Part shown: in pieces, positions 24,323-64,000 of the stretch
Layout of the letters: every line of letters begins with the position of its first letter
How positions within the stretch are numbered: position 1 is the stretch's first letter
Assembly (NCBI GenBank): GCA_002269645.1
Contig: NIVC01000362.1
Span: 124,001 to 188,000 of the forward strand
DNA from: Macrostomum lignano
Taxonomy: Eukaryota
DNA: 64,000 nt
Reading direction: 5' to 3'
The notes under the pieces: generated by a model
Databases searched by the model: none
What the model saw: the letters and a program-made list of their open reading frames with translations, nothing else
What the model was told of the DNA's origin: nothing
Made by a program: the position numbers and the translations under genes

Positions 24323-24424
24323 CCACTTGCTTACTGCATGACCAGCTTCGCTTTTAGCGCGGCTACGTCTATGGATATCCATGGCTCAGTGTTGTGTGGC
24401 ATTATCTGCGCCATTTGGAAGTCG

Positions 24425-25070: not shown

Positions 25071-25569
25071 GCTACACTTTGATAGGCTTTGATAAAATTG
25101 TCATGCAGGCAATGCTTCTCAAATGACCAAAATATTACTAACTCATCATACGCGTGTTAGCCTAGATTACAAGAACTGAACTCAGTGAAACAATGTTTTT
25201 CTTACAGATGCTTTGTTTAGCTAGCTTTTGAAATGAAAACAGTACGTAGTCTTGAGGTTTTTGCCCAAACCAATAATTCTAGTCTTAAATTTTCTCATTT
25301 CACTCTTGATGCCCAAATTCGTATTCCTAATTTGCTACTGCGTTACGGTGTCTTAAGTAGTATTACCAGCTTTTAAACTGAATTTATTTTGTTAAACTAG
25401 CTTGAATATTATTTGCTAAGTCATTGATGCTGTTGTTAATCAGACTAAAATTCTTTTGATAATGTTATCTTTATACCAAGCTTTTCTACTATGTTGTAAG
25501 TTCTTGCCTATTTAACTTACCCTACCTTAATTACTTTCAGCTTTTTCATAAGCTGTTAATAAAGCCCAG

Positions 25570-26520: not shown

Positions 26521-26564
26521 CCCCATAACCAAAATTCGCACATTGCTGCCAATCTAAATTCGCC

Positions 26565-27700
26565 ATGCGCTTCCTGGACGCAATCAACGCGGTGAACCCG
26601 CATCTGCAGAATGGCCTGCCCAAAGACTACGGCTGGGTTGTGCTGGCCGGCACGGGCGGCTTCGTTGTGAACATGCACCTGGCTAGGCAGGTCGGCCTGG
26701 CTAGGAAGAAGTTCGGCGTCGAATATCCCACAATGTATAGCGACAGTTCTAAGGAGTTCAACTGCGTGCAACGATCGCACCAGAACTATTTGGAGAACGC
26801 GCCTTTCTTCTACTTCCTGCTGGCTTTCGGTGGCCTGCAGGTAAATTTTGTGCCAATTTTCACCTTGAAATGTTCACCCTTCCATGCCAGTAAGGTGTTC
26901 TGCACTGTCTTAGTTTTCAGTGTCCGTCTCAGCTTTCGTGTGTCCCTCCGCATTAGTGTGTCCATCTCAGCATTAGTGTGTCCACTTCATCATTAGTGTG
27001 TACACCTCAGGATTAGTGTGTCCACCTCAGCATTAGTGTTTCCACTTCATCATTAGTGTGTCCACTTCATCATTAGTGTGTCCACTTCAGCATTAGTGTG
27101 TACACCTCAGCATTAGTGTGTACACCTCAGGATTAGTGTGTCCACCTCAGCATTAGTGTGTCCACTTCAGCATTAGTGTGTACACCTCAGGATTAGTGTG
27201 TCCACCTCAGCATTAGTGTGTCCACTTCAGGATTAGTGTGTCCACCTCAGCATTAGTGTGTCCACTTCAGCATTAGTGTGTACACCTCAGGATTAGTGTG
27301 TCCACCTCAGCATTAGTGTGTCCACTTCAGCATTAGTGTGTCCACTTCAGCATTAGTGTGTCCACTTCAGCATTAGTGTGTCCACTTCAGCATTAGTGTG
27401 TCCCTCTCAGAATTCATTAGGTACCAATTGGTCGTGCAATTCGCGCTTAATCAGAGCGATTAGCTGTTAATAAATTAATAAAACTACTGTGTGTATGACT
27501 CACCAATGCAGGCCCCCCGCTGCTCGGCCGCCTGCGGCGCTCTCTACCTACTCGGTCGGATCGCGTACGCTCGCGGCTACTCAAGCGGCGATCCTAAGAA
27601 ACGCATGCGCGGCGCTTTCGGCTATATTGGCCTGCTGGGCCTCCTAATCAACACCCTGCTGCTTGGCGGCCGCATGATCCGGGCCGGCTGCGGTAAATGA
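26565..27700 (+). CDS. MGST3: Microsomal glutathione S-transferase 3-like (MAPEG), 2 exons (26565-26840, 27512-27700), 154 aa
   Basis: Motifs [26 protein letters not shown] and [23 protein letters not shown]. Phase-0 GT-AG intron. Confidence 0.92.
26945..27410. repeat. 20-bp minisatellite (CATTAGTGTGTCCACYTCAG)
   Basis: About 23 units in the MGST3-like intron. Confidence 0.95.
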
Positions 27701-35559: not shown

Positions 35560-38500
35560 GTCAGTGGGAGCGGCAGACCATATGGCCAGGACTGCGGAGC
35601 GATCCCCAGCCCAGGCCATCACATCGGATGCCGCCGGCGGCCGAGTGTCCGTCGTCCGAGTCGTCCTGCGGCTGGGCCACTGGTGGGGCTGTGGCCGCGA
35701 TCTCGGCAGCGGCAGCGGCAGCGGCAGCGGCAGCGGCAGCGGCAGCGGCAGCGGCAGCGGCAGCGGCAGCGGCAGCGGCAGCGGCAGCGGCAGCGGCAGG
35801 CAGGTGCACCGGTGTCTCGGAGCCGCGGGCTGGCAGCGATAGCAGCTGATCAGTGTGCCGCCGCATGAGAGTGCCGTCTGCACTCACGGTGCAGTTTCGG
35901 GCCCCGCCAGACTCGACAGTGCCCTCTTGCCAACGGTTGCTAGTGGTGGTGCTGTAATCTCGCAACAGCACTCGGTCTCCAGGTCGGAACATCCTGGCTT
36001 GCCTGGGCGACTGTTGAAGCGCTGACTGCTGCTGCTGCTGCCGGTTGCTGACGAGCGAGGGCGTTAGCAGATCAAGCCGGGATTGAAGTCGGCGCCCGAA
36101 GAGCAGCTGGCTGGGAGCCGAGCTCGTGGCTGAATGCGGCGTATTGCGATAGGCGAGCAGAAATTGCTGCAGAGCTTTCTCAGACGGTCCTGATTTCTTC
36201 AGGTACTGTTTTAACACTTTCACGAACCGTTCAGCTTGTCCGTTTGTCGCCGGATGGAATGGCGCTGAAGTCACGTGCTCGATGCCGTTGATCCTCAAGA
36301 ACTCGGCGAATTCTGACGACGTGAACTGGGCTCCGTTGTCCGATACCAGAGTCCGCGGCAGGCCCTGGCACGCAAAGATCTCGCGAAGACAGTTGATCGT
36401 CTTGGCTGACGTCATGCTGGTCAGCTGCTTCACCTCCGGCCACTTGCTGTGCGCGTCGATAAGCACCACGTCCGTTCACTGGCCCAGCAAAGTCGATGTG
36501 CAGTCTGGACCACGGCTCGGACGGGAAGGGCCATGGGTGCACTGGCGCCTTGGGCGGATCAGCCTGGTTGAGCCGACAGGTTTCGCATGCCTTGACGGAG
36601 GTCTCCACGTCCTTGTCCAGGCCGGGCCACCACACGTAGCTGCGCGCGAGCGCTCTCATGCGGCTGGCACCGGGGTGAGCTTGGTGCAGTTCGCCGAGGA
36701 CCATAGGGCGGAGTGCCGACGGAACGATGACCCTGGATCCCCACAGCAAGCAGCCTTGTTCGATTGAGAGCTCGTGCTGTCGGCCAGAGAAAGCTTCGAG
36801 ACCGTCTGCAGCTGCAGGATCCGGGAGCCAGACTGCAGACACAGCAGCACCCTGCCGAGCTGCGCATCAGTCCGCGTCTTCTGTGCGATCACCTTGGCAG
36901 TCAGAGCCGAGCCGACCTCTACGTCGATGAACGGGGAGTTCACGGCTGTCTCCTCGATTAACTGATCACCGAGGGGAAGGCGAGAGAGCGAGTCGCAGTT
37001 GCCATGCCTCGCCGTCGGTCTGAACTCCAGGCTGTAGTCGTAGTTGGAAAGCCGAATGGCCCAGCGCTGCATGCGGGCTGCAGCCTGTGCCGGAATGGCC
37101 TTGCGCTCTCCCAGTAGACCAAGGAATGGCTGGTGGTCAGTGACGATGGTGAAGCGTCTCCCGTACAGGAACTGGTGAAATCTGTGCAAGCCGAACATAA
37201 TGGCCAGAGCCTCTTTGTCCAGTTGAGAGTAGTTACGCTGTGCGGGGGTCAGGCTGCGGCTTGCGAAGGCGATAGCTTGACCTTGGCCGCCGATCCTGTG
37301 AGACAGAACCACCCCCAGTCAATATGGCGAGGCGTCGCACTCCAAGTACAGTGGCAGCTCTGGGTTGTAGTGCACGAGCGCACTCGAGGACAGCAGCAGT
37401 CGCTTGGACTCGTTAAAGGCCTGTTGCTGCGCATCTCCCGGCCCATGCCCACTTGGTGTTCTTGGTCAGCAGCTGGTTCATCGGCGCCACGACGGTTGAC
37501 AAGTGCGGCATGAACTTCGAGTAATGGGTTAGCATGCCCAGGTAGGCGCGCAGCTGGCTGACATCCTTTGGAGCAGGTGCGTTCTGCACGGCTGTGACCT
37601 TGTCAGGCAGAGGTTTCAGCCCGTGTGCGTCGATTCGATGACCGAGATACTCCACCGAGTCTTGAAAGAACAGGCACTTGGCCCTGTTCAGTCGAAGGCC
37701 AGCGTCCTGAAAACGCTGCAGCACTCTAGTCAGGTTCTGTTTGTGCTGCGCCTGAGTCTTGCCTGTGAGGAGAATATCGTCAACGAACACCTGGACACCG
37801 TCGAGATCGCCCAATAGCGTTTCCAGAGTGCGCTGGAAGATGGCGCTGGCCGAGTTAATGCCAAAGGGCAGTCTGTTGAGTTGAAACAGGCCTCTCGACG
37901 TGTTGATGACTAGGTAGGTACGGCTCTCCTCGGACAGTGGCAGCTGCAAGAACGCGTTCGACAAGTCGAGTTTTGTTCATTTGCATCCTCCGCCGAGCTT
38001 GGCGAAGATGTCCTCAATCCGCGGCAACGGATAGTGCTCAGGCTTGGCCGCGGCGTTGAAGGTCACCTTATAATCGCCGCAGATGCGAATCTCGCCATTC
38101 GCTTTCACCACTGGGACGATCGGAGGAGCCCAGTTTGAGTGTTTGATCGGCGTGATGATGCCCTCGGCCTCGAGTCGTCTCAGCTCCTCGTCCACACGCT
38201 CCCTCAGCGCGTAAGGCACTGGCCTGGCCTTAAAAAATCGTGACGTGGCCTGCTCGTCCACCTGCAGCTTGACTTCGCCGTGGCGATAACACCCAAGTCC
38301 GTCAGCGAAGACTTCAGAGAACTGCTGCATCAGGTCGGTGGTTGCGGAGCTGGAGCTGACCGAGTTGACCTGAGCCACGATTGCTTGCCAGTCCAACCTT
38401 AGTCGAGCCATCCAGTCTCGTCCAAGAAGAGCGACATTGCCCTGGGAAACCACGAGCAGTGGAAGAATTTCGTTCTGGCCATTATAGCTCACTGAGACTT

Positions 38501-39200
38501 TGGCTTCGCCCAGTGGTTGGAATTGCTCGTTGGTGTACGTGCGCAGCACCATCGTGGTGGGCTGTAGGCGCAGTCCTGGAAGTCTCTCATCCACCATCCG
38601 CTTTGGAATAAACGTGACGGCTGACCCGGTGTCTAGCTCAAACGGGCAACTACGACCATCAATATCTAGCGTTACCGTCAGGGATCGGCGTGATCGTGGT
38701 CCAACGTAAAAAATTGAGCCTTGGGTGTCCTGCTCCGGTGCCGGTGCAGTGGACTCCAGCTTCTTGACCCTGGCTGACCTGCAGACTTTCTGGATGTGAC
38801 CCATTTTACCGCAAGCATGACACTTGGCGTCGCGGAACTTGCAGCTTTGCCGATCATGACGTCCACCGCATCCGGCGCAAGGTTGCTGCTGAGGCGCGTG
38901 CACTGAGGCAGAGTGGCGGATCGGTTGCTGCGGATGGGCATTGCCGTCGCTGGCACCCCTGCTGATAGCTGCGACCGTCTCGGAAGTTCTTGGCGCGATT
39001 TCGCTAGCCTCCATGGCTGACACCGTTGTGACCATCAGCGCGTACGTCAACTTCGAGATTTCTAGCAGTTTTGAGCGAAAAGCATCGCTCCGAAGGCCGA
39101 AAACAGCTTGATCGCGCAGTCTCTCCTGCAGCGTGTTGCCGAAGTTGCAGTGCAGAGTGGCTGCTTTGAGCCCGGCCAGGAAAGTAGCGAAGTCTTCCCC
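35560..39200 (-). mobile_element. Ty3/Gypsy (Mag/K02A2.6-like) retrotransposon internal region, frameshifted, gag 5'-truncated
   Basis: Gag zinc knuckles (CHACGKMGHIQKVC), protease FELDTGS, RT FVDDILL, RNase H (YSQLDKEALAI), integrase (HQAHPG..C..C, DAHSKWPEV, DNGAQF, NGQAERFV), split over several frames. Confidence 0.93.
35705..35800. repeat. (GCAGCG)n hexamer run
   Basis: About 15 perfect units. Encodes poly-Ala in the integrase frame. Confidence 0.95.
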
Positions 39201-39659
39201 CGGCAAGACTTATTCCCCCGGAAATCCCCCGGCAATCCAACTAAATTATTCGAACCATGTAAATTTTAACATCTCAAGCTTTACTTACTTTTCAAATTTA
39301 AATACCTCCAAAGAAATGCGTATTTCCTTTGGTTGTTAGATTGCTGCGAAGACCGCAGTGGATACACGAGTATTCCTCTCAGGGCTGCCAATTGACAAAA
39401 AAGATGACGTGATCAAAGCAGTTAGCAAACGGCCGACGAAATAAAACAACCATGAGAGTACTCGTACTACATCCCAAAGACTTGCTTCCGTCGACAGACT
39501 TTTACCTCATGATCAACGACCAGATAAAGAATCCAGCTCATGGCTGCAGGCTGGATGAGACAGAGTGGAAAGGAAAGAAAATGACGATTAGAAAAGGGAA
39601 GAATGGCGAGATAGGGGATGACAGAAAGGATATAAAAGATAAAAGCAGAGAGGAGCGCC

Positions 39660-42869: not shown

Positions 42870-43105
42870 TAACCCTAAGGCACCAGTACCCTAGCCTAAC
42901 CCTGAACCATAACCCTAACCCCAACCCTAACCTAACCCTAAACCCTAACTTAAAGGCACTAGTTCTAACCCCGACCCTAACCCTAAACCCTAACCCTAAG
43001 GCACAAGTTCAACCCCAACCAAAATTAACCCTAAGCCCTAACCCTTATAGGCACCCTAAATAACCCTAATAAAACCCTGTATAGGCACAAGCTCTAACCC
43101 TAACC
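42870..43105. repeat. Degenerate telomere-like (CCCTAA)n tract
   Basis: AACCCTAACC/AACCCTAAAC units interrupted by AAGGCAC spacers. Confidence 0.7.
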
Positions 43106-44049: not shown

Positions 44050-46530
44050 TGATCGAAATTACATCGAGCTAAATCTATTTAAGAGGCTTCAGAGCAACCT
44101 GAGAAGGCTGCGCCGTGAACCCGCACTGCTGCAGGAGTACCACCGCTTTCCGATGAGCCAGAAAGAAGCTGGAATAGTGGAGGAGGTTCCCGACGGAACG
44201 CACCATCTTGTCCACTACTTGCCTCAGCGAGCAGTGATTCGTCCTGAAGCAGAGTCGACGAAGGTCAGAGTAGTTTTCGATGCCAGTGCTAAGCAAGATC
44301 GGTGGAGCTCGTCCTTAAATGAGTGCCTGGAGACTGGATCGTGTTCGTTGGTCGAGATTCCTCGTCTTCTTCAAGCATTCCAGTTTCATCCGATCGCTCT
44401 TACAGCTGATATTGGGAAGGCGTTTCTTCAGATTCACATTGCTGAAGAAGATCGGGATGCACTCGGTTTCTCTGGCCACAGGATCCAAGGCGAGCTGAAT
44501 CGCCACTCGTTGTTCTTAATGACGCCGCTTTGGTATTCGGACTCACCAGCTCACCTGCGATTCTGGAGACGGTCATTCAACACCATTTAGCATCTCATCG
44601 GGACCAGGATGCGCAGTTCGTGGACAAAGTATCGAAAGAGATCTATGTGGACAATCTAATCTCTGGGTGTGCAAGCGAACGGCAAGCCATGGAACTCATC
44701 CAAAAATCCCGTCACGTCTTCAGCCAGGCGGGAATGAATCTACGCCATTGGCAGTCCAACAGTAAAGCGGGTTTTGGTCGCAGTTCGAGCTAGCGCTACA
44801 GACCAGGACATTCTGGCTCCAGCCCTGTCAGTAGAGACTCACAGAATGACGGAAGACCACGCGGGAGCTATTCCTCCGCCTCATTGGGTGAGGAGGGCGT
44901 GTTGTCGAAGGTCCTTGGGTTGCACTGGGAAACCGGATCGGACGTGTTCGTGCTTCGGTTCTCACCACCTGAGGAGTTACTCAGAGCTACGCAATCCAAG
45001 CGAGTCATGCTAAAGCTTCTGGCACGTGTCTATGATCCTCTCGGCTTCCTAGTTCCACTGCTGACTTGGCCGAAAACTATGTATCAGATGCTCTGTCTTT
45101 GCAAAGTTGCTTGGGATTGCCCGCTGGATGAGCCGACTGAACAGCTGTGGCAGAAGTGGCTGCTGGACATGCTGAAAGCACGATTCCAGGTACCGCGGCT
45201 GGTGCTTTTCGCGACACGGGTGGTCCAAGAGATGCAGCTGCATGACTTCTGTGACGCATCCGCAAAGTGCTACGCGGCTTGTCGTCTCTACCTACGAGTT
45301 CAGTACACTGACGGTTCTGTCAGCTGTACCCTGGTGGCGGCGAAGGCCAGAGTGGCTCCACTATCGGCCCTGTCGATTCCTCGGCTGGAACTATTAGGTG
45401 CCCTGATACTGGCCAGACGAATGATTTCAGCCCTGAGTCAACATCCTCAAGTCCGCCAAGTTTTCTGCTGGACAGATAGTGCCGATACTCTGTACTGGAT
45501 CCGACAGCACAAGCCCTGGAAGCTCTTTTTACACAACCGAGTCTCTAAGATCCACCGGCTGCTTCCGGAGGAATCATGGCGACACTCGCCAGGCAATGAG
45601 AACCCTGCCGATGTTGCATCTCGCGGCACTTCGGTCGACAAGCTGAAGACTGATACCAGCTGGTGGTATGGTCCTGATTGGCTGATTCGACCTCCAGAAT
45701 GCTAGCCTGACCAAATCCTCTCTCAATCTAATCTCAGCAACGGCAGACGAGGAGCAGAAGCTATCAGCAGACAAATCATTCGTCCTACTCACTGATGTTG
45801 TTCCGGACATGGGACTGCATCGAGTTATACCAGATTCGGATTTCTCCTCCTGGACCAAGCTCATTAGGGTGACGGCTTACGTCTTTCGATTTGTCAAGAA
45901 TCTGCAAGTTCGAACTTCCGCAGCGGGGGAGGAGCGAGCAGGAACTTTGACAGCTGCAGAAGTGTCAGAAGCAGAGGAGCGTTGGCTGAAAGAGGTAAAA
46001 CGAATGAGTTTCCCTGCTGAGATTGCTCACTTTGAAAGGTCGACAGCATCTATACGGACCTCGCAAAGCAGCTGAATCTCTTCCTCGACACCAAAGGTCT
46101 GCTCCGAAGTCGCGGTCGATTGAGAGAATCAAACGTTGGTGCAGCTGCTGATTGCCCCACCCTCATCCCGAACAAGACTCATCTAAAAGTTCTCCTCATC
46201 CGAGACGCGCACAGCAAAGTTTTGCACGGGGGAGTTCCAAGCACCCTGTGCAAACTTTTGGCTGATCCGTGGCAGGCAGCGAGTGAAGGCAATTCTTGGA
46301 AAATGCGTCGTCTGCAGGTGTCTTCAGGGACTCCTGTTCGCTGTGAAGCAAGTTCCTGCGTTGCCAGAATCTCGCGTGAAAGCAATAAGAGCGTTCGAGT
46401 GGAGCGGGCTCGACTACTGTGGTCCGGTCAAGCTAGGAGAGAAGACACTGCACTGTCGAGAAGGGCTACATCTTGGTGTTCACCTGCGCAGCAACGCGAA
46501 CGCTTCATCTAGAACTAGTGAAAGACCTAA
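44050..46530 (+). mobile_element. BEL/Pao LTR retrotransposon pol fragment, frameshifted
   Basis: KVRVVFDASAK, ADIGKAFLQI, FGLTSSPAIL, IYVDNLISG, YDPLGFL, HDFCDAS, IPRLELLGAL, NPADVASRG, WWYGPDWL, and integrase GLDYCGP. Confidence 0.92.
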
Positions 46531-50477: not shown

Positions 50478-52331
50478 ATGGGCAATCCAGTGTCAAAAAT
50501 AATGGACAGTTTTTCTAAGAAGAACCAAGAAACCATGGCTGAAATGCAAAAGCTAACAGTAAGTTCTTGTTGTAATTCTGTGTTCAGTAGTTAGTTATTA
50601 AGTGATTAATAATTGGCTGTCATGAAAAATCTTTTAAAATATAAACAAGTTGCAATTATAAATTTGTTGACTATAGTCTACACTTGTTTGATTGCTAAAT
50701 TAAGAGCAAAAGTACAAACTGTACAATTACTGTAGATACAATTTTCAATATATTTTACTTACAGTAGAAACATCAGAATATTACACCTAAAATTGATAAG
50801 TAAGTCTGTTATTTAAAAAGTGCCTGAAAAGGGCCGTTTTATTGACTCAATGTTGTATACCAAATTCAATCAGTTGTGCCGTCAATTGGAGATGCAAAAC
50901 GCTATGCGAGAGCGCATGATGGCCGCCCAGATTGCCCGAGGCCGCGAGCTGTTCAATTGGACGGCCAGTTTTTATGCGCTGGCTTTTGCTGGCGCCGCCG
51001 CAGCAGCCAGGCATGGCAAGAAAGTCGCCATGGCCCCAATCGTGCCGTTCACCTTTATCATTGCCTACCAGTATGACCTGTGCTACGGGTCTAAGATGCA
51101 GCGAATTCGACGTGAGTTGCTTGTAAAAATATCCTGGAGTTATTGTTTATGCATAGCGTACATGTCATTGTATGCGTGCTGCATGGGCCTACAAGACATG
51201 GTAAAAAGGCATTCTGTTGGAGATCGAATTTTATATAGGCCTAATAATGATGACTCAGTTGAGTCATTTTATCATTATCATTACTCAAGCGCTAATTCAT
51301 TATTTCAATCATCACTTAGACGCCGATTCACTATTCTGTCGTTAATTAGGCACCGATTCACCATTTCATCATTGATTAGGCGCCGATTTACTATTTCATC
51401 ATTGCTTAGGCCTCGATTCACCATTTTATCAATAATTAGGCCCCGATTCACCATTTCATCATTGATTAGGCGCCGATTTACTATTTCATCATTGCTTAGG
51501 CCTCGATTCACCATTTTATCAATAATTAGGCCTCGATTCACCATTTTATCAATAATTAGGCCCCGATTCACCATTTCATTGATTAGGCGCCGATTTACTA
51601 TTTCATCGTTTCTTAGGCGCCGATTCACTATTTCATCATTGCTTAGGCCCCGATTCACCATTTTATCAATAATTAGGCCCCGATTCACCATTTTATTATT
51701 AATTAGGCCCCGATTCACCATTTTATCATTAATTAGGCCCCGATTCATCATTTTATCAATAATTAGGCCCCGATTCACCATTTTATCATTAATTAGGCGC
51801 CGATTCACCATTTTATCATTAATTAGGCCCCGATTCACCATTTTATCATTAATTAGGCCCCGATTCACCATATTATCATTAATTAGGCGCCGATTCACCA
51901 TTTTATCATTAAGTAGGCCCCGATTCACCATATTATCATTAATTAGGCGCCGATTCACCATTTTATCATCAGTCAGGCGCCGGTTCACAATTTATCATCA
52001 GTTAGGCGTCAATTTACCATTTCATAATTAATTAGGCACCGATTCACCATTTCATCATTTGGGCTCCCGTTCACCATATTTAATAGGTCCTAGTTTAGAC
52101 TTTTATCAATATGTGCCCAGGCGCCTTTTCACCAATCCATAATGATTGCCGAAATCATTAGGCATCGTTTCACTACAAAAATCAATTTGCTTTTGTTAAA
52201 ATTGTCCAACTCAAGGCATGGCGGAGAATATTCTGGCTGACGAGTTCGACCTGACTAGCATGCCGAACGGCATGGTGACTCTTGACGAAATCGACCGCAG
52301 GCGTTTGGCTAGCCAATCTCCGGCCAAATAA
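50478..52331 (+). CDS. PLGRKT: Plasminogen receptor KT (C9orf46) homolog, 3 exons (50478-50558, 50874-51111, 52216-52331), 144 aa
   Basis: Spliced MGNPVSK...RQLEMQNAMRERMMAAQIARGRE...PIVPFTFIIAYQYDLCYG..RIR/RMAENIL...PNGMVTLDEID. Matches the PLGRKT motifs I recall (RQLIMQSEMRERQMAMQIA, PIVPLSFILTYQYDLGYG, EAEDIL, PRGMITF). Confidence 0.88.
51310..52050. repeat. 30-bp minisatellite (AGGCCCCGATTCACCATTTTATCATTAATT)
   Basis: About 24 units in PLGRKT intron 2. The unit is stop-free in one frame on each strand, giving spurious long ORFs. Confidence 0.95.
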
Positions 52332-52454: not shown

Positions 52455-52856
52455 AAGATAGATAGATAGATTGATTGATAGATTGATAGATTGATTGATA
52501 GATTGATACATAGATTGATAGATTGATTGATAGATTGATAGATAGATAGATAGATAGATTGATTGATAGATTGATAGATTGATAGATTGATTGATAGATA
52601 GATAGATAGATTGATTGATTGATTGATAGATTGATAGATTGATAGATTGATAGATTGATTGATAGATTGATAGATAGATAGATTGATTGATAGATTGATA
52701 GATAGATAGATAGATTGATAGATAGATAGATAGATAGATTGATAGATAGATAGATAGATTGATAGATTGATAGATAGATTGATTGATCGATAGCTTGATT
52801 GATAGATTGATAGATAGATTGATTGATAGATTGATAAATTGATAGATAGATAGATA

Positions 52857-52891
<35 letters not shown>

Positions 52892-53115
52892 AGATTGATA
52901 GATAGATAGATAGAAGATAGATTGATAGATAGATTGATAGATAGATTGATTGATAGATTGATAAATTGATAGATAGATAGATAGATAGATAGATTGATTG
53001 ATTGATTGATTGATAGATTGATAGATAGATAGATCGATAGAAGATAGATTGATAGATAGATTGATAGATTGATTGAGAGATAGATTGATTAATTGATTAA
53101 TGAATAGATAGACAG
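52455..53115. repeat. Compound (GATA)n/(GATT)n microsatellite
   Basis: About 650 bp of interleaved GATA and GATT units. Confidence 0.97.
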
Positions 53116-56741: not shown

Positions 56742-58766
56742 TCAACTAATAACGCACTCCGAATCAGACTGAGGATTTGAATCCCGATTTTGTCGCCTGG
56801 TGGGCCTTTCGTGCCAAGCAGAACCGAATGCACCGACACCAGGAAAACCTGCAGAGAGGCGTCCATGTACATCACCGGCGACTACTCCTACTGCACCAAA
56901 TGTCGGCGGCGTTGTCGGAGGTTCCTGCCTTCGTGACTGCCATGCAAACCTAGTATAATCGGTTCTATCCTCCACTCGTGCATCGATAGCTTTTGTCAGC
57001 TCAGTCAACTTGAAGGAATCTTCCGGATCGAGCCGCTTGGACCCAAGCTTGTCTGTAATGAACTGATCCAAGTCGACGCTCTGGTGCAGGCCTTTCAAGC
57101 ACCTGTGCGCTTTCACGAGTTCGTAGGCCGTTTTCTGCAAAGCCATCTTCGCGTCCATTCCAAGGTGATACTTGAGACGCCTCACAGCACCGCGCTGGTT
57201 CGGATTTTCTCCATACTTCTTGCTCACTCTGTCAATGGGAACAGATTCGTAGTATTCAAACTCCCTCTGTTCGGTGCTGGTGTTTCGGTGAAGTCTCCAG
57301 TGGCAGGCGCACTCTTTACAATACCCATCACTGTTCATGGCACAACACTTGGCTTTATCCTCGTTATTGGGATAGCCACAGTCTGCATGGCACGTTCTTC
57401 GACACCTGATGCACCAAGTGATGCAGGACCGATCATCCCGACTTCTTTCTTCGATTCTGGTGCGCTTAATTCTAAAGTGGCTCTGTCCTGGGCACATTTG
57501 CTCTTGAAGCTGCTTGTTTGAGTCGTGTATGCTGAACAGGTCTTCGATTTCCTTTGCCAATCTTTCTGCTTTTGTCTCAAGTTCTTCCGCGCTTGTAGCG
57601 TCAATTCCTTGTCGAAGCTTTGCATTTAACTCACAGAGGTCGGTAGTTTGGCGACCAAACATGTTCAAAGAGGTGTCCATGCTGCTGTAGGTGAAGACGC
57701 TGTCTAAACTGCCGGCGTGATGAGCTTCAGCAAACTCGTCCGAAGTGCGATGATTCACAAAACTTTGTTGCATCCGCTGTGTGTACTCGCTTTCATGAGT
57801 CTCCAGCTCTCTCTTGTAGCCACGCAGTGTCTCTCCGATTGAAATGTCCAACTCTGCCTCCCGGCTGATCTTGTTCAAAAGGTCCTTGGACTGTTCAAGG
57901 CCGGCCTTCAACGCTTGAAGATACTGGCAGGCATCTTCCAGATGCTGCGTTTTTGCCATTGGGACTGAAGTTGGAACCGACGGGCAAAAGTAGCGCAATG
58001 GAGTGAGATGAATTTCCATTGCTTTGTTTGCATCCCTTGAATCTAACGATTTAAAATACTCTAAAACATCTGGTGGCTCTCTCATTGTCTTCCTTGGCTG
58101 CTTGAAGTCGGTGTGACATTCGATCTGATAACTGCCAGAACTTGAGCGGTTCGACAAGTCAAATTTAGCGAATGATCTGGCAGACTGCCCAGCATCTCTG
58201 ATCCACTGTTCCACCTTCCAATCTACCAGTTCATGACAGTCAGATGTTGCTCGCTCGAAGAAGCTGGACGCATTGGACCAGCCTTTGCAGACAATGAACG
58301 CCTTGCCTCCGTACCGGATTCCTGTCACAACGTGTGTTGCACCAGTGCTTAGTAACTTCTTCTCATTGTCTACAAGCTCGTTGCAGCACTGAAGCTCCTC
58401 AAACGCACCCTTCACGTCGTACTGCAAAGTGACGCTTCCACCGGTCTCGGTGGAGCTTGCCTCGGTGACGTATTTTGCTGATCCTGTCATTGACTTCTCG
58501 CCGAGTTTCCACCAGGCCAATTTGAACTCAATGCAAAACCTCAGCTGGGCGTTCAGCCCCAGCTGTTCCGCTCGGCGCTTCGAGCTGTACTCGTAGTCCA
58601 GAGAAAATCTCACGCTGGGTGCATCATCCAGCCGAGTCGTCATTCGCCGAATTCGATCAGATGGCCAGGCCGACTGTGCAATGATCCGGTGCTGTCGGAT
58701 GTCATACATCTGTCCGAGCTGAAAGGCCCGGCCCAGAGACGGGATGCACTCCGGTTGAGTCTGCAT
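56742..58766 (-). CDS. Stonustoxin-like MACPF/CDC-domain protein with Cys-rich module and C-terminal CaaX, 674 aa, intronless CDS
   Basis: N-terminus PSLGRAFQLGQMYDIR..., GSAKYV, VTLQY and ATHVVTGIRYGGKAF match the stonustoxin/neoverrucotoxin motifs (PALGRPFTLGMLYD, GSAKYL, ATHVVTSILYGANAF). Cys module CIRCRRTCHADC..C..CKECACHW..H. Ends in CVIS. Confidence 0.8.
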   Translation of the reverse strand: MQTQPECIPSLGRAFQLGQMYDIRQHRIIAQSAWPSDRIRRMTTRLDDAPSVRFSLDYEYSSKRRAEQLGLNAQLRFCIEFKLAWWKLGEKSMTGSAKYVTEASSTETGGSVTLQYDVKGAFEELQCCNELVDNEKKLLSTGATHVVTGIRYGGKAFIVCKGWSNASSFFERATSDCHELVDWKVEQWIRDAGQSARSFAKFDLSNRSSSGSYQIECHTDFKQPRKTMREPPDVLEYFKSLDSRDANKAMEIHLTPLRYFCPSVPTSVPMAKTQHLEDACQYLQALKAGLEQSKDLLNKISREAELDISIGETLRGYKRELETHESEYTQRMQQSFVNHRTSDEFAEAHHAGSLDSVFTYSSMDTSLNMFGRQTTDLCELNAKLRQGIDATSAEELETKAERLAKEIEDLFSIHDSNKQLQEQMCPGQSHFRIKRTRIEERSRDDRSCITWCIRCRRTCHADCGYPNNEDKAKCCAMNSDGYCKECACHWRLHRNTSTEQREFEYYESVPIDRVSKKYGENPNQRGAVRRLKYHLGMDAKMALQKTAYELVKAHRCLKGLHQSVDLDQFITDKLGSKRLDPEDSFKLTELTKAIDARVEDRTDYTRFAWQSRRQEPPTTPPTFGAVGVVAGDVHGRLSAGFPGVGAFGSAWHERPTRRQNRDSNPQSDSECVIS

Positions 58767-59732
58767 GTTGAAGTCGTTCGTCAGAATTGCACTGAAATGT
58801 TCGGCAAATGATTGTTAGTGCGAGAAAAGGGTTTGCATCTTTTGAAAATGTAAAATTATAAAGTAATAGGAATAAAATCCTTTTTAAGGTTCTACCGTTT
58901 AACTTGCCCACTAGCGATTTCTCCAGGAAGGGTCGATGTTGTGTCTTGGGTTAAGGGAACTAAAAGTCTACTACAACAAAGGAGATACCAACTATTCTTC
59001 TCTCGCTGATATAATTCCTACTGCACTAATCAAAAGTAAAAAAAAACATAGAAAACAAATTTTGTTTAACAATCCTTATTTTTAATAGCATTTTTTCTGC
59101 AAGCAAATCTTTTGCTAAAAATCTGGATTACATGCTCGAAGTTTAGTGACAGCGAAAAAATGTACCTGTTAAAAATTTAGAATACCAAACACACATCACA
59201 CATCTAGTTAAATATAAATGAAAGTGTATTGTCCTCACAATAAGGAAATTCATGTTTGTTAGTTTTTTACCGATTTGTTCAAGTTAAAACTCAATTATAG
59301 AGCGCAATTTACTGAATAAGATCCACATGAGTGGTAAAAAAGTATACAGCAAGAATTGTATCTGATCTGAATAATTCGTAAAAACAAAAAACACTTATTC
59401 ATAGGTGCGAAAAAAACAAATTATATTAATTTAACAACTAAATAACGCGCTGGGTGGGTTATTATCGCTAAGCAGCAGTATGATATGCGTACGAACCGCG
59501 ACCTATTCTGTTTAACATGCTGTCGCAAGAAAACTGGTGCAAAAAATCCACGGCAAATCAAGTATAGTTGAAAAATTAACGAACTGTATAGAAATTTGTT
59601 GAAATTCCAAGGCAAAAAATCAACGTCTCCTCTACAATTTTGTCTGTTAGAAATAGCAAAATTTCGGCAGTTCACGATTTTACAATCGAATATTGTCGAT
59701 ACTCACAAACAAGGGTGCCGTCAATCTATAAT

Positions 59733-61187
59733 TCAGGAATCCGATGAGAGGTTCCGGAAGGTCACCTGCACTCCGGATGCGTCAGAATCAGGAACCTCGG
59801 ATTGCTCAACAGCTACTAGAGGTTGCACCAATTTGAGCTTTTGATTCCCTGGCGTGGGGCAATATTCTACTAACGTTTTGTAAAATTTCTTCTCGAGCTG
59901 TTTGTTGTTCCAGAGTTTCAATTCAACTTGGTGCTCGAACTTTTGCAGTTCAAACAATTTCATCGGGCAAGACAGGCAGTACATCTTTTGGTTTGGTTCT
60001 GTCATGCTCCTCATGATGAATTCGGCTCTCTGGGCCTGGCTTTTTATTATCTGGGCGCCAGCCTCCCGGAACTTATTGGAAATCACAACCAGAACGTCAC
60101 CGGCATCGGCGACTGCGGTGGCCCATTCCTGCAGGTGAGCGTACTTTTTTCCGGCGTCAAAAAGACCCGTTTTCAACTCAATTTTTCTCACACGATTGGC
60201 AGGCTCAGCCGTGTGATCTAGAACAGCTTCCCTCACAGCATCATCAAGGGAAGACTTGAATGATTCGAGCTCCTGAACTTCCGCTTCCAGCTTCTTCACC
60301 ACGTGAGTCCACGCTGTCGGTCTCAGCTTGTAAATAATTTCCTCCAGAGTAGTCAGAGCTTCTTTCAGCACATCGTAGCAGCGAACAGTTTTGCAGATGC
60401 ACGTGGGCGGTAGTGGCAGGGGCGCTGGTGGAGTGTCTTCAACCAGCAGTGACAGAGGAAGCAGGTTGACCGTCAGTGGCGATCTAGCTTCAGCAGCTTG
60501 GATTGTTTGAATGCACTTCATGGCTTCAATGAAGTTGGTCGGTGGGCTGGCCAGGTGGAAGTCTCCCTTGTAGGCAACTCGGATCTTCTGCATGACTTTC
60601 GTTTCCTCCGACGTCATGTCAAGCGAGGCAGCTCCAGAGATGCTGACCAACGATGCAAACTTGCCAATCTGAGCTTGCAAATTGCCTCCGGTTTTGTCGC
60701 TCGTTGCGGAGTCTTCTTTGTCCCGCTCGAAAAAGAACAGAGCGGCTCCGCCATACTGAATTCCCATTACTACGTGAGTCGCATCTTTGTAGCTCGCTGA
60801 GCTCTTCAGCTTCAAACCCGGTGGGACAACAAGTTCCCAATACTTTCCTTGAACTTGCAGTCGATATATGGCGCTCTCCGTCTCTTTCTTCTCTTTTAAG
60901 GTAGTCTGGTAGTTCCCGGAGCCGCTAGCGGACACTAGTCCCGATAGAATTGACAGCGACAGATTTCCGGTCACTTTTGTGCTCAGGTTTTTGCTGTTCG
61001 CTGACGTTTCTGTGACGATATCGGTCTCCATGCTGATGTTCTTAGTTTCGGTCAGCATAATCTGCATCTGCTCAGCGGTGAATAACTTGACTCCGGGGAT
61101 GATTTGGCTGGTCCTGCTGTTGTACAGTGCACCAAGGGTGAATGGATGGCCCACCGCAGGAATGGTGAGAGAGCTCGATGTTGTCAT
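59733..61187 (-). CDS. Stonustoxin-like MACPF/CDC-domain protein (second subunit), 484 aa from the ATG at 61187, intronless CDS
   Basis: IPAVGHPFTLGALYNSR..IIPG, LSLSILSGLVSASGSGNY, ATHVVMGIQYGGAALFFF and YKGDFHLASPPTNF align with the SNTX alpha/beta N-terminal domain. A helical region follows. No PRYSPRY domain is recognisable. Confidence 0.85.
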   Translation of the reverse strand: MTTSSSLTIPAVGHPFTLGALYNSRTSQIIPGVKLFTAEQMQIMLTETKNISMETDIVTETSANSKNLSTKVTGNLSLSILSGLVSASGSGNYQTTLKEKKETESAIYRLQVQGKYWELVVPPGLKLKSSASYKDATHVVMGIQYGGAALFFFERDKEDSATSDKTGGNLQAQIGKFASLVSISGAASLDMTSEETKVMQKIRVAYKGDFHLASPPTNFIEAMKCIQTIQAAEARSPLTVNLLPLSLLVEDTPPAPLPLPPTCICKTVRCYDVLKEALTTLEEIIYKLRPTAWTHVVKKLEAEVQELESFKSSLDDAVREAVLDHTAEPANRVRKIELKTGLFDAGKKYAHLQEWATAVADAGDVLVVISNKFREAGAQIIKSQAQRAEFIMRSMTEPNQKMYCLSCPMKLFELQKFEHQVELKLWNNKQLEKKFYKTLVEYCPTPGNQKLKLVQPLVAVEQSEVPDSDASGVQVTFRNLSSDS

Positions 61188-64000
61188 CTTTGTTTCCAAA
61201 CCGATTTGTAAGCTGAAATTGTTTACATTTTGTTTTTTTTGAAAGTACGAATTTTAGTTTTTCTTTGTAGCAATGAAATCATGGTGCTTTTAAAGTCTAA
61301 TGTTCTACATCATCACGCAACTGATGTGCAAAATGAAGAGTGTACAAGTTGTGTGGTTATGAAAAATTTGACTTTGATTGAGCCTGAATAAATGACCATA
61401 CAAGCATGAATTTAATACACCTCTTCCATTCAATTTTAATAAAACTCGCTTTATATTTCAACAAGCGGCATTCAATTTCGGCAATTCGGCCATCTCGTGG
61501 ATATCCTATCGCATGCCATATTAAAGGCGTTAATTCTGTTTATGGACAAAACTTGTTCCTGCATGCAGATTTCCTATTCAATTTTAATCCTTTTTGGTTG
61601 CACTCTTTTATAGTGTACGGTGCGAGTTATCAATCTTCAACAGCCCCCTCTCAAGCCAACAACTAATACTTTAGGTGTCTGTGGCTCTCTATAGCATCCC
61701 TCAAAACTGACTGCTCTTCTTTAAGTTCGCTTCTAGAAGACAGAAGTTTCATGTACGATAGCATACACTGAACGCGAAAAGATGCGTATTTTACAAATAA
61801 GAATAATGAGCGACGAGAAGATACTCGAAGAAGCAGGAGATGAAGCAGAAGAAGAAATCGGTGATGAAGACGATGAGGTTGAACCCTGCACTCTGGGGAC
61901 GAGTGTCTGACAGAGACAGAGCCCCCTTCTTAATGCACACGAGAACGGGCAGGATATGTCCATCTAGCGCAACTCATAAAGCCGCTTCTGCTGCTGCCCT
62001 CGTACCTTCATTTTTAAATTAAATGCTGCACGCCGAAATTGAATGGGAAATCTGGATGCAGAGCAGTTTTTGTCCATAGACATGCAGAATGAACGCCGTT
62101 ACTATGGTATGAAATAGAATATCCATGCAATTGGCGAAATTGAATGCTGCTTGACGAATTGGAATGACCGTTGAAGTATTGCAAAAACTAAATATAGGAT
62201 TCAATACTTGGTTTTTCTTGCTTAAATGTGTATGGCACTCGTGCGCTTCGCTGGCACTCGGTCACAAAGGTCATGGTACAATACTTGGTTTTAAGTGCTT
62301 AAATGTCTAGGTTGCCAATAGAAACGGCCGGGTGATTCCCAAGGTTGCGCATGTATGACAGGATATATATTTCTCGTGCATTAAATGACTCCAGCCAATA
62401 CGCGATCACGAGCCATTTAAGCACGCTTTTAGCGTTTAATGCACGCTTTTACACATTTATATCGTGTTACAATATACTCGTAGAATGATGAAATTGAATG
62501 TCAGCTTGCCAAAATAGAATGTGAGTTTTGTTGAAATTGAATGAAAAAAGATGTAATTAAAAATATTGTTTTGTCATGCTACATGTATGTGGAACAGTGA
62601 ACATCCGAAACGGAACGGCGCATAGACAGACCAAGCGTTTGAATTAAACTCGTGAAAGTAAGCTATAGACAACTCAATTTCTCATGCTGGAACGATGTGC
62701 CAAAATAGAAGGAACGATTTGAGTTTTTATTTGCAGAAATTATATAAACAGGTGATGAGGACGCACTTTTTTCCAAACCCCGCGCTAGCACATGGGCTCT
62801 AAACTTACTAGCCTACTAACAGTGAGCGATGGGCATTTTTATCCTTTTTCTGCGAATTGTCATAGAATCTATACTAGATATAATGTTTGGTTATACTAGT
62901 AGTCATAATAACATAGGCGCTGCTTTTGGGTCATAAATCATCGCTTTCGAAGCTGGTCTGACAGCCACCTGCGCCTCACTCAGTGTTGAGGCGGGCGCCA
63001 GATGGTCTGAGAGGATGCGGGCGGTAGCTTTTTTCTCATCATTTTGACAGGCCATCAAGATTTATGAGGTCAGAGCCTATTGTTCGTGTTCACTCAAGCG
63101 TGTGACAGCTTTGACAGCTATGCGTTTTACCCCTAAAAGTACGTTGGGATTAGCGATTAGCGATTTCTCTTCATTATCTTCACTTTCTATTTAATAAGAG
63201 CTTTCTAATGTATATTTGTTCATTAATTTTTGTCAATCCTACGCGATAAGTCATAAATCATTTTGTTGCGATTTTGATTGATTTATGGCCACACCTGTCA
63301 TCTTTTTACGATCCTGTGGGAACTGATAGGATCTCCCGGTCACGTGATTCTGGGTGGCAACAAGTTCAGCCAATCAGAAAATTCGGCGCTCATTTTAACA
63401 AATCGGCTCAGCCAATCAGAATCGACATGTTCCATTATAACAAACTGCGGTCCAGTTGGCGGCTATTTAAACCGGTGTTTTTGGCCCGCTCGGACTCCAA
63501 CTTGCTCGGGCCCAGCACGCAACTTCTGGTTCCCGGAGCGCGACCGCCGTTTCTTGATCCCCGGATTGCGACTTCCCCCCATCATCATCAAGGACGAATT
63601 CCCCGGTCATCAGCAGCGAACATCAAACGAAGAGCATCACCTGCTAGCTATCTGCGAAGACTGTGACAGCATCATCCCGGGTCTACAGCTACAGAGCATC
63701 AAGCCGATTCGGTCACTGTGGATTACCTGGTCTCCGGCTGTTGAGTTTCTGATTGGTTGGGTGAGAGGCTACCTGGACTTGCTTGATTGAGTGATCCCTT
63801 ATCTGTCCCCTGTTTCAGTAGCTGGATTAGGCGCACACTTTTGCTCTTTTTGTTCAGTAGTGCTGTAATCGAGGCAGAAGTCATTCAATAATACTGCTAG
63901 TAGTCTGAAACTCCAATTCAATCTGAAGTGTGAAGTGATCTAAGGAGCAGGTTAAATCTAATAGTTATTCTCATCGGTTTTATTTCTTTGTTCGCCGATG

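Follow-up and report, generated by a model that had tools for sequence, protein, structure and literature searches.

The locus described here raises the question of why a protein whose first half resembles a stonustoxin should end in a farnesylation-type CaaX box, and whether this box could be a working signal that brings the protein to membranes from inside the cell. The locus lies in the window, by which we mean the whole stretch of 64,000 nucleotides that was analysed. On the minus strand, 56742..58766 is one uninterrupted open reading frame of 674 codons plus stop, and the tail of the protein reads ...SDSE-CVIS-stop. Read on the minus strand, the plus-strand letters tca act aat aac gca of 56742-56756 give TGC GTT ATT AGT TGA with GAG before it, and the original prediction of a stop preceded by GAG TGC GTT ATT AGT (ECVIS) was thereby borne out. 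The ends of the gene are defined by two features.

56742..58766, minus strand: complete single-exon coding sequence, 674 aa plus stop, with the TGA at 56742-56744 and colinear with BOX15_Mlig004669g4
58767..58824, minus strand: conserved leader of ~58 nt upstream of the ATG, at the start of the nucleotide homology between the window and M. lignano contig L001

The coding sequence is 87% identical in protein and 91% in nucleotides to the transcript-based M. lignano gene BOX15_Mlig004669g4, with which it is colinear, and an in-frame stop is found 16 codons upstream of the ATG. The leader spans a TTTCAG whose end lies ~28 nt before the ATG, and the M. lignano 'partial' gene model starts right after this AG. 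The TTTCAG is a possible splice acceptor, in cis or in trans. At the 3' side, nucleotide conservation between the window and contig L001 halts abruptly ~8 nt past the stop codon, and the compared flanks show no further conserved block downstream of it. The GenBank annotation of the M. lignano copies ending in CTIS was built from RNA-seq transcripts, and these models are unspliced over the 3' region and stop at the homologous TGA. The end of conservation so soon after the stop, together with the CTIS of the transcript-based copies, argues against a different last exon. Neither AATAAA nor ATTAAA was found in the 250 nt 3' of the stop, which hold only weak variants, and this result is uninformative. 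The exact window protein was not found in the searched collections, the nearest being the M. lignano copy at a dS of ~0.18. Intergenic DNA of the window and of the M. lignano contig could not be aligned; the window could accordingly be a homeologue or derive from a congener.

Two other interpretations of the open reading frame were tried and set aside. A pseudogene was rejected, since the frame is intact in both genomes with a dN/dS of 0.2-0.4; the neighbouring paralogue is frameshifted in the M. lignano contig. A tRNA-like or other RNA element in the conserved last ~50 nt, where GGGATTCAAATCC is T-arm-like, was dropped when ARAGORN returned zero tRNAs across the window.

The anatomy of the protein, from N- to C-terminus, is as follows up to the final tail segment.

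57981..58766, minus strand: SNTX-type MACPF/CDC-like domain, aa 1-262 (phmmer, Foldseek, AF2 pLDDT ~85-93)
58452..58595, minus strand: predicted TMH1 region, aa 58-105 (AF2 helices 62-101, alternating hydrophobic/polar pattern)
58134..58277, minus strand: predicted TMH2 region, aa 164-211 (AF2 helices 170-199 of low pLDDT, flanking the central sheet)
57501..57950, minus strand: helical (FAT-like) domain and coiled coil, aa 273-422 (phmmer to aa 344, Foldseek, AF2)
57267..57434, minus strand: Cys/His-rich module, aa 445-500, presumed metal-binding (conserved ligands, AF2 pLDDT 92-98)
56931..57236, minus strand: C-terminal helical domain, aa 511-612 (AF2 helices 525-612, aligning to the post-module region of the family)
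56757..56930, minus strand: disordered Gly/Pro/Ser/Arg-rich linker, aa 613-670 (pLDDT ~30, composition)

The name stonustoxin-like, which was given to this protein at the outset, holds for its first ~385 residues and fails for the rest. A phmmer search of the PDB matches 4wvm_B with an E-value of 5e-11 across aa 8-344, and Foldseek matches the same chain (4WVM) at 1.5e-14 across 384 columns, with many MACPF/CDC structures next. The Pfam model MACPF_SNTX (PF24674) matches with an E-value of 2e-4, which is below its gathering score. In the MACPF signature, T144 and G153 are invariant and H145 and Y152 nearly invariant across a 40-sequence alignment. The domain starts at about residue 5, and no other part of the protein is so constrained, with a dN/dS against the M. 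lignano copy of 0.21 compared to 0.40 overall. Within the predicted TMH1 region, aa 67-86 have the strongest beta-type hydrophobic moment of the whole protein (0.92, where the mean is 0.30 and the SD 0.17). The position of TMH2 is assigned by analogy with the MACPF fold, and its amphipathic signal is weaker than that of TMH1. Long helices are modeled by AF2 over aa 273-422, including a helix bundle at 273-386; Pfam PF21109, the helical domain, gave no match at E<=0.1, and the assignment is made from structure and pairwise alignment only. Neither the thioredoxin-like domain (PF18078) nor PRYSPRY/B30.2 (PF13765, PF00622) has a Pfam match in the protein, whose C-terminal half is a different module. 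Given the absence of these two domains, it is not a canonical stonustoxin.

A second part of the original prediction was that the protein has no N-terminal signal peptide and ends in a disordered Pro/Gly/Ser-rich tail, and both points stood. We found no signal peptide or transmembrane segment in the protein, the highest 19-residue Kyte-Doolittle mean being 0.93 and the MACPF domain beginning almost at the N-terminus. Stonustoxin has no signal peptide either, so its absence here does not by itself discriminate between a toxin and an intracellular protein. The tail, aa 613-674 (62 residues), has the G/P/S/R-rich composition G8 P7 R6 V6 S6 A5 and an AlphaFold pLDDT of ~30.

The C-terminal half of the protein carries the Cys/His module. 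Its ligands C452, C455, C459, H460, C463, C474, C483, C486, C488 and H493 are invariant or nearly so in alignments A1 and A2, and the module is presumed to bind metal. It has no match in Pfam, and the A2 profile found nothing for it in the PDB, where the hits were weak Toc34/septin/GIMAP matches from partial GTPase segments of some rows as well as coiled-coil noise. Foldseek likewise gave no fold match for it in the PDB (best E 3.5) or in BFVD (best E 0.35).

An exhaustive HMMER search returned 597 homologues, among them many proteins of ~1200 aa in which the N-terminal domain and the Cys module are both matched. The architecture of these proteins in Pfam terms is MACPF_SNTX, Stonustoxin_helical, Thioredoxin_11, fn3 and Septin/AIG1, to which the Cys/His module is added, and the GTPase is of the septin/AIG1/Toc34 class. 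The hosts are sponge, corals, molluscs, prawn, sharks, teleosts, amphibians and reptiles. The Cys/His module defines a large and unnamed animal family of which the window protein is a member. When the full-length A1 profile was run against an index of 5.8 billion proteins, proteins sharing FN3 dominated the candidates, with at least 5 matches. In 76 of 81 representatives no more than 30 residues separate Met1 from the start of the MACPF domain, a hydrophobic N-terminus occurs in only 3, and almost the whole family is leaderless. Additionally, the GTPase domain carried by most members is a feature of cytosolic type.

Compared to its full-length relatives the window protein is much shorter. The alignment breaks off near residue 390 and resumes near residue 900, so that ~500 residues are missing, comprising most of the thioredoxin domain, FN3 and the whole GTPase, and the protein has neither a GTPase match in Pfam nor the P-loop motif G-x4-GK[ST]. 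We take it to be a lineage-specific short form from which the thioredoxin, FN3 and GTPase parts have been lost. Between the module and the C-terminus lie 174 aa, compared to 120-220 aa across the family. A paralogue and a further family member are encoded elsewhere in the window.

59733..61199, minus strand: adjacent paralogue of 488 aa, SNTX-type MACPF and helical domains, with no Cys module and no CaaX (tblastn E 3e-8)
29531..32470, minus strand: 979-aa open reading frame with a septin/AIG1-like GTPase, the Cys/His module and an aromatic/basic tail (Pfam Septin/AIG1), 24 kb away

The product of the adjacent paralogue is 34% identical to the N-terminus of P0003, a full-length family member of M. 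lignano, and its syntenic copy in contig L001 is split by a frameshift. The 979-aa protein has no MACPF domain and is 63% identical to aa 625-1163 of P0003; its module is 53% identical to that of the 674-aa protein. The parts of the full-length architecture are in this way held by the window as separate genes, one with MACPF, module and CaaX, one with MACPF only and one with GTPase and module.

The putative lipid signal lies in the last residues of the protein, which contain two features.

56745..56795, minus strand: conserved terminal 17 codons, RQNRDSNPQSD-SE-CVIS here and RQNRDSNPQSD-PD-CTIS in M. lignano
56745..56756, minus strand: CaaX box C671-V-I-S674, predicted farnesylation site (fits the FTase rule; CTIS in 4 M. 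lignano accessions)

A CaaX box with Ser at X is of the farnesyltransferase (FTase) substrate type, as in the CTIS of human GBP1, and CVIS fits the FTase rule with Cys at -4, Ile at a2 and Ser at X. It sits behind the disordered linker, and in the structural model the end of some 60 disordered residues should be highly accessible. Four M. lignano accessions, representing three distinct sequences, end in ...DCTIS with the preceding ~45 residues scrambled. Residues 613-657 are essentially unalignable to the M. lignano copy and saturated (dS 0.65, dN 0.67), and the last 17 codons carry 5 nucleotide changes (4 nonsynonymous and 1 synonymous, dS 0.09). These fall at positions -2, -1 and a1, where a CaaX box is tolerant, and leave the codons of Cys, a2 (Ile) and X (Ser) untouched. 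This comparison has too few sites, the chance that 5 random changes miss the 3 critical codons being ~0.4, and the pattern is compatible with constraint on the sequence while giving no standalone proof of it. The original prediction had named conservation of the CaaX in orthologs and paralogs as a check. Every available close homologue keeps it, as CTIS in the 4 M. lignano accessions, with the close homologues in the searched databases coming from one lineage only, M. lignano. The wider family is considered below. A single CaaX occurrence is not significant alone, and the excess over chance comes from the retention in M. lignano together with the recurrence in the family.

This recurrence becomes apparent when the C-termini of the remote relatives are compared to what would be expected from their composition. 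A strict CaaX-type ending should arise in ~0.2-0.3% of proteins, as calculated from the composition of the homologues, and 7 of the 149 remote representatives have one against 0.24-0.50 expected (P 6e-9 to 1e-6), which is a 14- to 30-fold enrichment. Tails that are aromatic and basic are found in 35 of the 149 against 8 expected (P 1e-13), and about 90% of family members have no CaaX. For P0018, one of the CaaX-bearing proteins, all 9 of the closest relatives end in CIIQ, CVIQ, CTMQ, CVLQ or CALM behind variable basic linkers. Among further members of its cluster, including Pocillopora meandrina CAH3115956.1, 25 of 29 have a CaaX-type end and the other four are truncated fragments. The 10 coral-type CaaX proteins form one monophyletic clade with pairwise identity down to 51%, whose sister clade ends in the Trp/Phe/Lys tails ...WYHRFKFW or ...FKYWLFKG. 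Elsewhere, P0035 ends in CVIM after KRRHQEK, with its stop codon verified, Pelodiscus sinensis has CLLQ and Mytilus edulis has CNIL. Many of the family proteins in the databases are automatic gene calls on metagenome contigs, and some of these termini could be wrong. The box recurs in the wider family above chance and is kept through the 10-protein clade, and the C-terminus of the family appears, from these sequences, to be specialised for membranes by either a CaaX or a Trp/Phe/Lys tail.

The coral-type proteins and P0035 have basic linkers before the box, and the window protein does not. The residues before its Cys are acidic (D-S-E-C), and a second membrane signal is absent: there is no polybasic stretch, and no other Cys is found within 115 residues, the nearest being C556. 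A single farnesyl with acidic neighbours and no second signal should have low membrane affinity, which predicts a weak or regulated association with endomembranes and not a stable anchor.

Taken together, we consider it probable that the gene encodes a leaderless cytosolic protein of the SNTX branch of MACPF/CDC, with FAT-like, Cys/His and helical domains, a linker and a functional CaaX, and that it is a lineage-specific short form which is farnesylated and acts on membranes. Farnesylation, membrane localisation, pore formation and biological role are each things that we infer, and for the farnesylation and the targeting to the cytosolic face of membranes the sequence supports the inference well. 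The original prediction had read the protein as lipid-anchored on that face, in the manner of an intracellular effector and not of a secreted venom toxin, and this reading is supported with the refinements given above. In the mechanism that we propose, farnesyltransferase would attach a farnesyl to Cys671, after which -VIS would be removed and the new C-terminus methylated at the ER. The lipid, on its long flexible tether, would then draw the protein onto the cytosolic face of a membrane, probably in a weak or regulated manner as the second signal is absent. There the MACPF domain could oligomerise and the helical clusters TMH1 and TMH2 insert into or remodel the membrane. The protein might in this way be an effector in defence or cell death inside the cell, perhaps together with its GTPase-bearing paralogues. 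We know of no demonstration of pore formation by members of the family other than the fish toxins.

The reading with a membrane-acting perforin-like domain has to be weighed against several others. The protein could be prenylated and membrane-targeted and still be non-lytic, with a MACPF domain that is a scaffold or a membrane-binding/recognition module. The short form would then act as adaptor or regulator, and perhaps as decoy or partner, for the GTPase-bearing paralogues, by way of the Cys/His and C-terminal helical modules that both have. The encoding of the full-length parts as separate genes in the window (56742-58766, 59733-61199 and 29531-32470) would suit such a role, as would the low model confidence and weak amphipathic periodicity of TMH2, and several MACPF proteins, namely astrotactins, BRINPs and Torso-like, are without demonstrated pore activity. 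However, the MACPF signature is conserved in what is the most constrained domain (dN/dS 0.21), TMH1 shows a textbook amphipathic hairpin pattern and the closest solved structure is that of a lytic toxin, and we regard a non-lytic role as unlikely while taking it seriously. We find it harder still to believe that CVIS is fortuitous or non-functional, in a soluble cytosolic protein whose Cys stays unlipidated, for instance because it is hidden by the acidic residues or by the fold. Taken alone, the pairwise comparison of the last 17 codons reaches no significance, the Cys has acidic residues beside it and no second signal, and ~90% of the family does without a CaaX. Against this, C, a2 and X are kept in M. 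lignano though the linker before them is scrambled, strict CaaX endings are enriched in the family, the box is kept through a clade of only 51% identity, and here it ends 60 disordered residues where it would be highly accessible.

A secretory explanation is very improbable in our view. It would make the protein a leaderless toxin or defensive protein, released from specialised gland cells by a non-classical or holocrine route, for which a C-terminal motif is irrelevant once extracellular. Its attraction is that the best match in both structure and sequence is stonustoxin, which is likewise leaderless, and that invertebrate venom transcriptomics routinely lists SNTX-like transcripts as putative toxins. 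But the protein is without the thioredoxin and PRYSPRY domains that the toxins have, its C-terminal half is common to proteins with a GTPase domain and carries a free Cys/His ligand cluster, both of cytosolic type, and the CaaX is conserved. The stonefish genome paper also notes that SNTX-like genes of non-venomous species are probably not venom toxins (PMC10566576). Finally, the true mRNA might use a splice donor upstream of the CaaX and another last exon, giving a mature protein that does not end in CVIS. That the 250 nt after the stop hold no canonical AATAAA would allow for this, but the unspliced transcript-derived models with their homologous TGA, the drop in conservation ~8 nt after the stop with no conserved block in the compared downstream flanks, and a module-to-C-terminus distance that fits the family norm make it hardly credible.

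With these alternatives weighed, the probable reading remains that of a farnesylated, cytosolic, membrane-acting MACPF protein, and its interest lies in the topology. To our knowledge, every animal MACPF/CDC protein characterised so far acts from outside the cell or from a lumen, and a perforin-type fold with a cytosolic prenylation signal would reverse this. It would also give a testable handle on the role of the many "stonustoxin-like" genes in non-venomous animals, which has been a question since the stonustoxin structure. The sequences suggest an animal family, vertebrate members included, that has so far gone undescribed and whose pore-former-like proteins act on membranes from within the cell; at its C-terminus CaaX boxes and Trp/Phe/Lys tails interchange. 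If farnesylation is borne out, cell-autonomous defence or cell-death biology could gain a new branch. A broader proposal, which we hold only tentatively and think rather doubtful, is an unrecognised metazoan-wide system of cytosolic perforin-like effectors, recruited to the cytosolic face of membranes by CaaX or aromatic-basic tails and switched by a GTPase, that permeabilise or remodel intracellular membranes. Their targets would then be pathogen vacuoles, organelles or the plasma membrane, reached from its inner side. In function each such protein would be the one-chain counterpart of GBP together with gasdermin, serving cell-autonomous immunity or regulated cell death. Our literature search found no account of a CaaX in stonustoxin, of a relevant farnesylated MACPF protein or of a stonustoxin with a GTPase domain, nor anything on stonustoxin in Macrostomum lignano, on Mlig004669 or on a MACPF/AIG1/GIMAP fusion family. 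Macrostomum lignano has working transgenesis (PMC5730564), which makes localisation in vivo feasible.

Looking at known systems can help to place the protein. Stonustoxin alpha/beta (4WVM) and the fish SNTX/neoverrucotoxin share with it the N-terminal MACPF/CDC-like and FAT-like helical domains and are equally leaderless. The identity is only ~15-18%, the window protein is from a non-venomous flatworm, and in place of the thioredoxin-like and PRYSPRY/B30.2 domains that it lacks it has a coiled coil, the Cys/His module, a helical domain, the linker and the CaaX. Members of the unnamed family (M. lignano PAA60539.1, Pocillopora meandrina CAH3115956.1, Gouania willdenowi XP_028328301.1) share with it the MACPF_SNTX N-terminus, the helical domain, all 10 ligands and a C-terminal helical domain of equal length, at an identity of only 20-35%. 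Human GBP1 is a cytosolic effector whose FTase-type CaaX likewise has Ser at X; its CTIS is the very tetrapeptide found in the M. lignano copies, and the full-length relatives, like GBP1, join a GTPase to a lipid signal. There is no homology between them, however; GBP1 is a dynamin-like immune GTPase, with a domain absent here, the GTPase of the relatives is of the septin/AIG1/Toc34 and not the dynamin class, and GBP1 has a polybasic patch beside its CaaX where the window protein has none. The gasdermins are alike in concept only, as leaderless cytosolic proteins with a pore-forming fold that a Cys lipid helps to membranes, but their fold is unrelated, the lipid is S-palmitoyl and not farnesyl, and activation is proteolytic. 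MPEG1/perforin-2 and other animal MACPF proteins have the same MACPF/CDC fold (Foldseek E ~1e-3) and a membrane-tethered MACPF domain. These proteins differ in having signal peptides, passage through the secretory pathway and lumen-facing TM anchors, whereas the tether of the window protein would be a cytosolic isoprenoid.

The genes of the MACPF-GTPase family that lie in the window, together with the Cys/His module of the focal protein, are as follows.

56742..58766, minus strand: focal ORF, uninterrupted, 674 codons; MACPF, module and CaaX, part of the full-length family architecture as a separate gene
57267..57434, minus strand: Cys/His module of the focal protein, compact and beta-rich, modelled at pLDDT 92-98
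59733..61199, minus strand: tandem SNTX-type MACPF and helical paralogue, 488 aa, without Cys module or CaaX
29531..32470, minus strand: GTPase and module gene, 979-aa ORF with a septin/AIG1-like GTPase

The focal ORF closes with GAG TGC GTT ATT AGT TGA (E-C-V-I-S-stop), so that the reported ECVIS ending stands directly before the stop codon. The last 62 residues have a high content of Gly, Pro, Ser, Arg and Val and are predicted to be disordered (pLDDT about 30 in two AlphaFold runs), in agreement with the disordered Pro/Gly/Ser-rich tail of the original prediction. The protein has neither a hydrophobic N-terminus nor a TM-like stretch (highest 19-residue Kyte-Doolittle mean 0.93), which bears out the claimed lack of a signal peptide, and the reading frame meets a stop 16 codons 5' of the ATG. 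The ~58 nt 5' of this ATG (58767..58824, minus strand) are kept between the window and the M. lignano homologue. A TTTCAG in this block ends ~28 nt 5' of the ATG, the 'partial' M. lignano gene model begins immediately 3' of its AG, and the motif may be a candidate spliced-leader trans-splice acceptor.

The description of the protein as stonustoxin-like holds for its N-terminal part by both sequence and fold. A phmmer search of PDB sequences matched aa 8-344 to stonustoxin beta (4wvm_B, E 5e-11) and also recovered the alpha chain. The AlphaFold model (pLDDT 85-93 over aa 1-262) has 4wvm_B and 4wvm_A as its best structural matches (E 1.5e-14, 384 aligned columns), followed by many MACPF/CDC structures. 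The Pfam MACPF_SNTX match is sub-threshold (E 2e-4). Of the MACPF signature positions, T144 and G153 do not vary across a 40-sequence alignment of the family, and H145 and Y152 hardly vary. Beta-type amphipathic periodicity is expected in segments that refold into a membrane hairpin, and its strongest occurrence in the whole protein falls in TMH1, the first helical cluster. The description does not extend to a canonical stonustoxin, since Pfam finds neither a thioredoxin-like nor a PRYSPRY domain. The C-terminal half instead consists of a coiled coil, the Cys/His module, a helical domain and the disordered tail. The ten conserved ligands of the module (C452, C455, C459, H460, C463, C474, C483, C486, C488, H493) form the pattern CxxCxxxCHxxC...C...CxxCxC....H, which is conserved from sponge to vertebrate homologues. 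The Pfam copy searched has no model for it, PDB yielded no match by sequence, and neither PDB nor BFVD yielded one by fold; some database matches bear the newer Pfam accession PF28033, and the module may be an undescribed metal-binding domain. Relative to the M. lignano copy the gene is under purifying selection, its dN/dS being 0.40 overall and 0.21 for the MACPF domain.

When 1.84 billion representative proteins were scanned exhaustively with HMMER, 597 homologues were recovered. Many of them, with lengths of 1150-1300 aa, show two separate matches to the query, at the N-terminal domain and at the module. In Pfam terms they consist of MACPF_SNTX, Stonustoxin_helical, Thioredoxin_11, fn3 and a Septin/AIG1-like GTPase, and the unannotated Cys/His module and a helical C-terminus come after these. 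The focal protein aligns to residues 1 to ~390 of these relatives and again from ~900, and therefore lacks most of the thioredoxin domain, FN3 and the entire GTPase. GTPase-less forms occur elsewhere, such as an 865-aa sea-turtle protein annotated 'stonustoxin subunit alpha'. Named members come from M. lignano, the corals Pocillopora, Oculina, Stylophora and Desmophyllum, the sponge Geodia, bivalves, a prawn, an ostracod, sharks and rays, teleosts, amphibians, turtles and lizards; the label 'uncharacterized protein' is attached to nearly all of them. Our literature searches found no description of this family; longer 'sntx-like' genes are mentioned in passing in a stonefish genome paper (PMC10566576).

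The window holds an intact copy of the 488-aa paralogue, which lies directly upstream of the focal gene; its syntenic copy on the compared M. lignano contig L001 (7455-8902) is unannotated and split by a frameshift into two ORFs. The 979-aa ORF carries a P-loop at aa 475, the same module at aa 767-816 and an aromatic/basic tail, ...HQFHNWMSSKFR; over residues 431-976 it shares 63% identity with aa 625-1163 of PAA60539.1, a full-length family member from M. lignano. No MACPF similarity was found in its first ~430 residues, and given the LTR-retrotransposon upstream this part may have been replaced or lost. With the full-length architecture split among separate genes, co-operation of the focal protein with GTPase-bearing paralogues is plausible.

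Retrotransposon remnants with fragmented reading frames lie at 35561..39206 (minus) and 44884..45705 (plus), one set with an integrase core (rve), RT-RNase H and an aspartyl-protease/gag-like ORF, the other a separate Pao-type peptidase A17 ORF. Between these two retroelement fragments is an interstitial telomere-like (CCTAAC)n array of ~17 degenerate copies (42895..43020). Long minisatellites with 20-35-bp units are dense over 11320..27414 (for example 75 copies at 11320-12823, 36 at 17677-18456 and 43 at 25572-26528). They alternate with low-complexity ORFs and a SET-domain ORF (13720-14775), and probably lie within introns of one large gene. At 50820..52059 and 52456..53089 a DUF2368-domain ORF continues into 25 copies of a 30-bp tandem repeat, followed by an (AGAT)159 microsatellite; as the repeat is open in both strands, this long ORF is probably a repeat artefact.

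In the collections searched, the sole close relatives come from M. lignano: four accessions that represent three distinct sequences, with 87% protein identity. All four end ...RQNRDSNPQSDPD-CTIS, so that the CaaX is conserved among close homologues. GenBank annotates this genome with ORFs called on transcripts derived from RNA-seq (PMC5730564), and the homologous stop is therefore transcript-supported. Window and L001 are 91% identical across the CDS, with homology from ~58 nt before the ATG to ~8 nt after the stop, a pattern in keeping with a coding 3' end. In the tail, codons 613-657 have been all but randomised (dS 0.65, dN 0.67), and the last 17 codons are retained (dS 0.09). Their five nucleotide changes affect positions -2, -1 and a1 (V to T via two substitutions), leaving Cys, a2 = Ile and X = Ser unchanged. 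Cys, a2 and X are the positions that determine CaaX specificity. Such a distribution of changes is what a CaaX under constraint should show, in a sample too small for significance alone.

The wider family points the same way. Strict CaaX endings (CVIQ, CVIM, CIIV, CNIL twice, CDLL, CQLC) occur in 7 of 149 remote representatives, when 0.24-0.50 would be expected from their own composition (P 6e-9 to 1e-6). All nine closest relatives of P0018, a CaaX-bearing remote homologue, are 50-62% identical to it and end CIIQ, CVIQ, CTMQ, CVLQ or CALM; the same holds for 25 of another 29 cluster members, among them a protein from the named species Pocillopora meandrina, and the remaining four are truncated fragments. 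In a neighbour-joining tree P0018 and the nine form one coral-type clade with pairwise identity down to 51%. We regard this family-level evidence as statistically significant. The CaaX of the clade follows a variable Lys/Arg/Ser-rich linker, matching the classic arrangement of a hypervariable region plus CaaX. The sister coral clade ends instead in Trp/Phe and Lys/Arg tails such as ...WYHRFKFW. Such tails (...RWYHRFKFW, ...KWWQFWC, ...RGWFGFF; P0180-P0201, P0013, P0037, P0038, P0078, P0092 and other remote homologues) end 35 of 149 representatives, about a quarter, with 8 expected (P 1e-13), and look like an alternative amphipathic membrane anchor in the CaaX position. With either ending in place, the family C-terminus has the look of an exchangeable membrane-association device. 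No prenylated MACPF/SNTX protein came up in the literature searches.

In 76 of 81 representatives no more than 30 residues separate Met1 from the start of the MACPF domain, only 3 of 81 have a hydrophobic N-terminus, and the GTPase and the cluster of free Cys/His ligands fit the cytosol; judged from sequence, the family topology is cytosolic. The original reading of a CaaX-anchored effector on the cytosolic face, rather than a secreted toxin, is thus supported and can be extended to the family. C671 would be farnesylated by farnesyltransferase, with subsequent -VIS removal and carboxymethylation. A ~60-residue flexible linker would tether the protein to the cytosolic leaflet, where MACPF oligomerisation could lead to membrane insertion or remodelling. 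Acidic residues adjoin C671, and neither a polybasic patch nor a second Cys lies near the CaaX, so we expect a weak, endomembrane-biased or regulated association. The basic linkers of the coral-type proteins, unlike the focal tail, suggest the plasma membrane.

Other explanations deserve weighing. The protein could be prenylated and yet act as a non-lytic adaptor, which we consider doubtful in view of the TMH1 periodicity, though well worth keeping in mind. That CVIS is fortuitous or unmodified would suit the small number of informative terminal codons; weighed with the CTIS endings and the family-wide recurrence, it is unlikely. A toxin released non-classically, like that of the stonefish, would accord with the N-terminal fold and the missing signal peptide, and seems very improbable beside the cytosolic family features. 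To a true mRNA ending in a different last exon we give hardly any weight, the homologous stop being transcript-supported.

By homology the focal protein belongs with the stonustoxin branch of MACPF/CDC and with the unnamed MACPF-GTPase family. Of the four domains that define stonustoxins proper it lacks two, and it is also without the GTPase of the larger family; for these reasons we do not file it as a member of either. By analogy its mode of action would be most like that of a lipid-tethered cytosolic effector, resembling GBP1 in its CaaX logic and gasdermin in the idea of a lipidated cytosolic pore-former.
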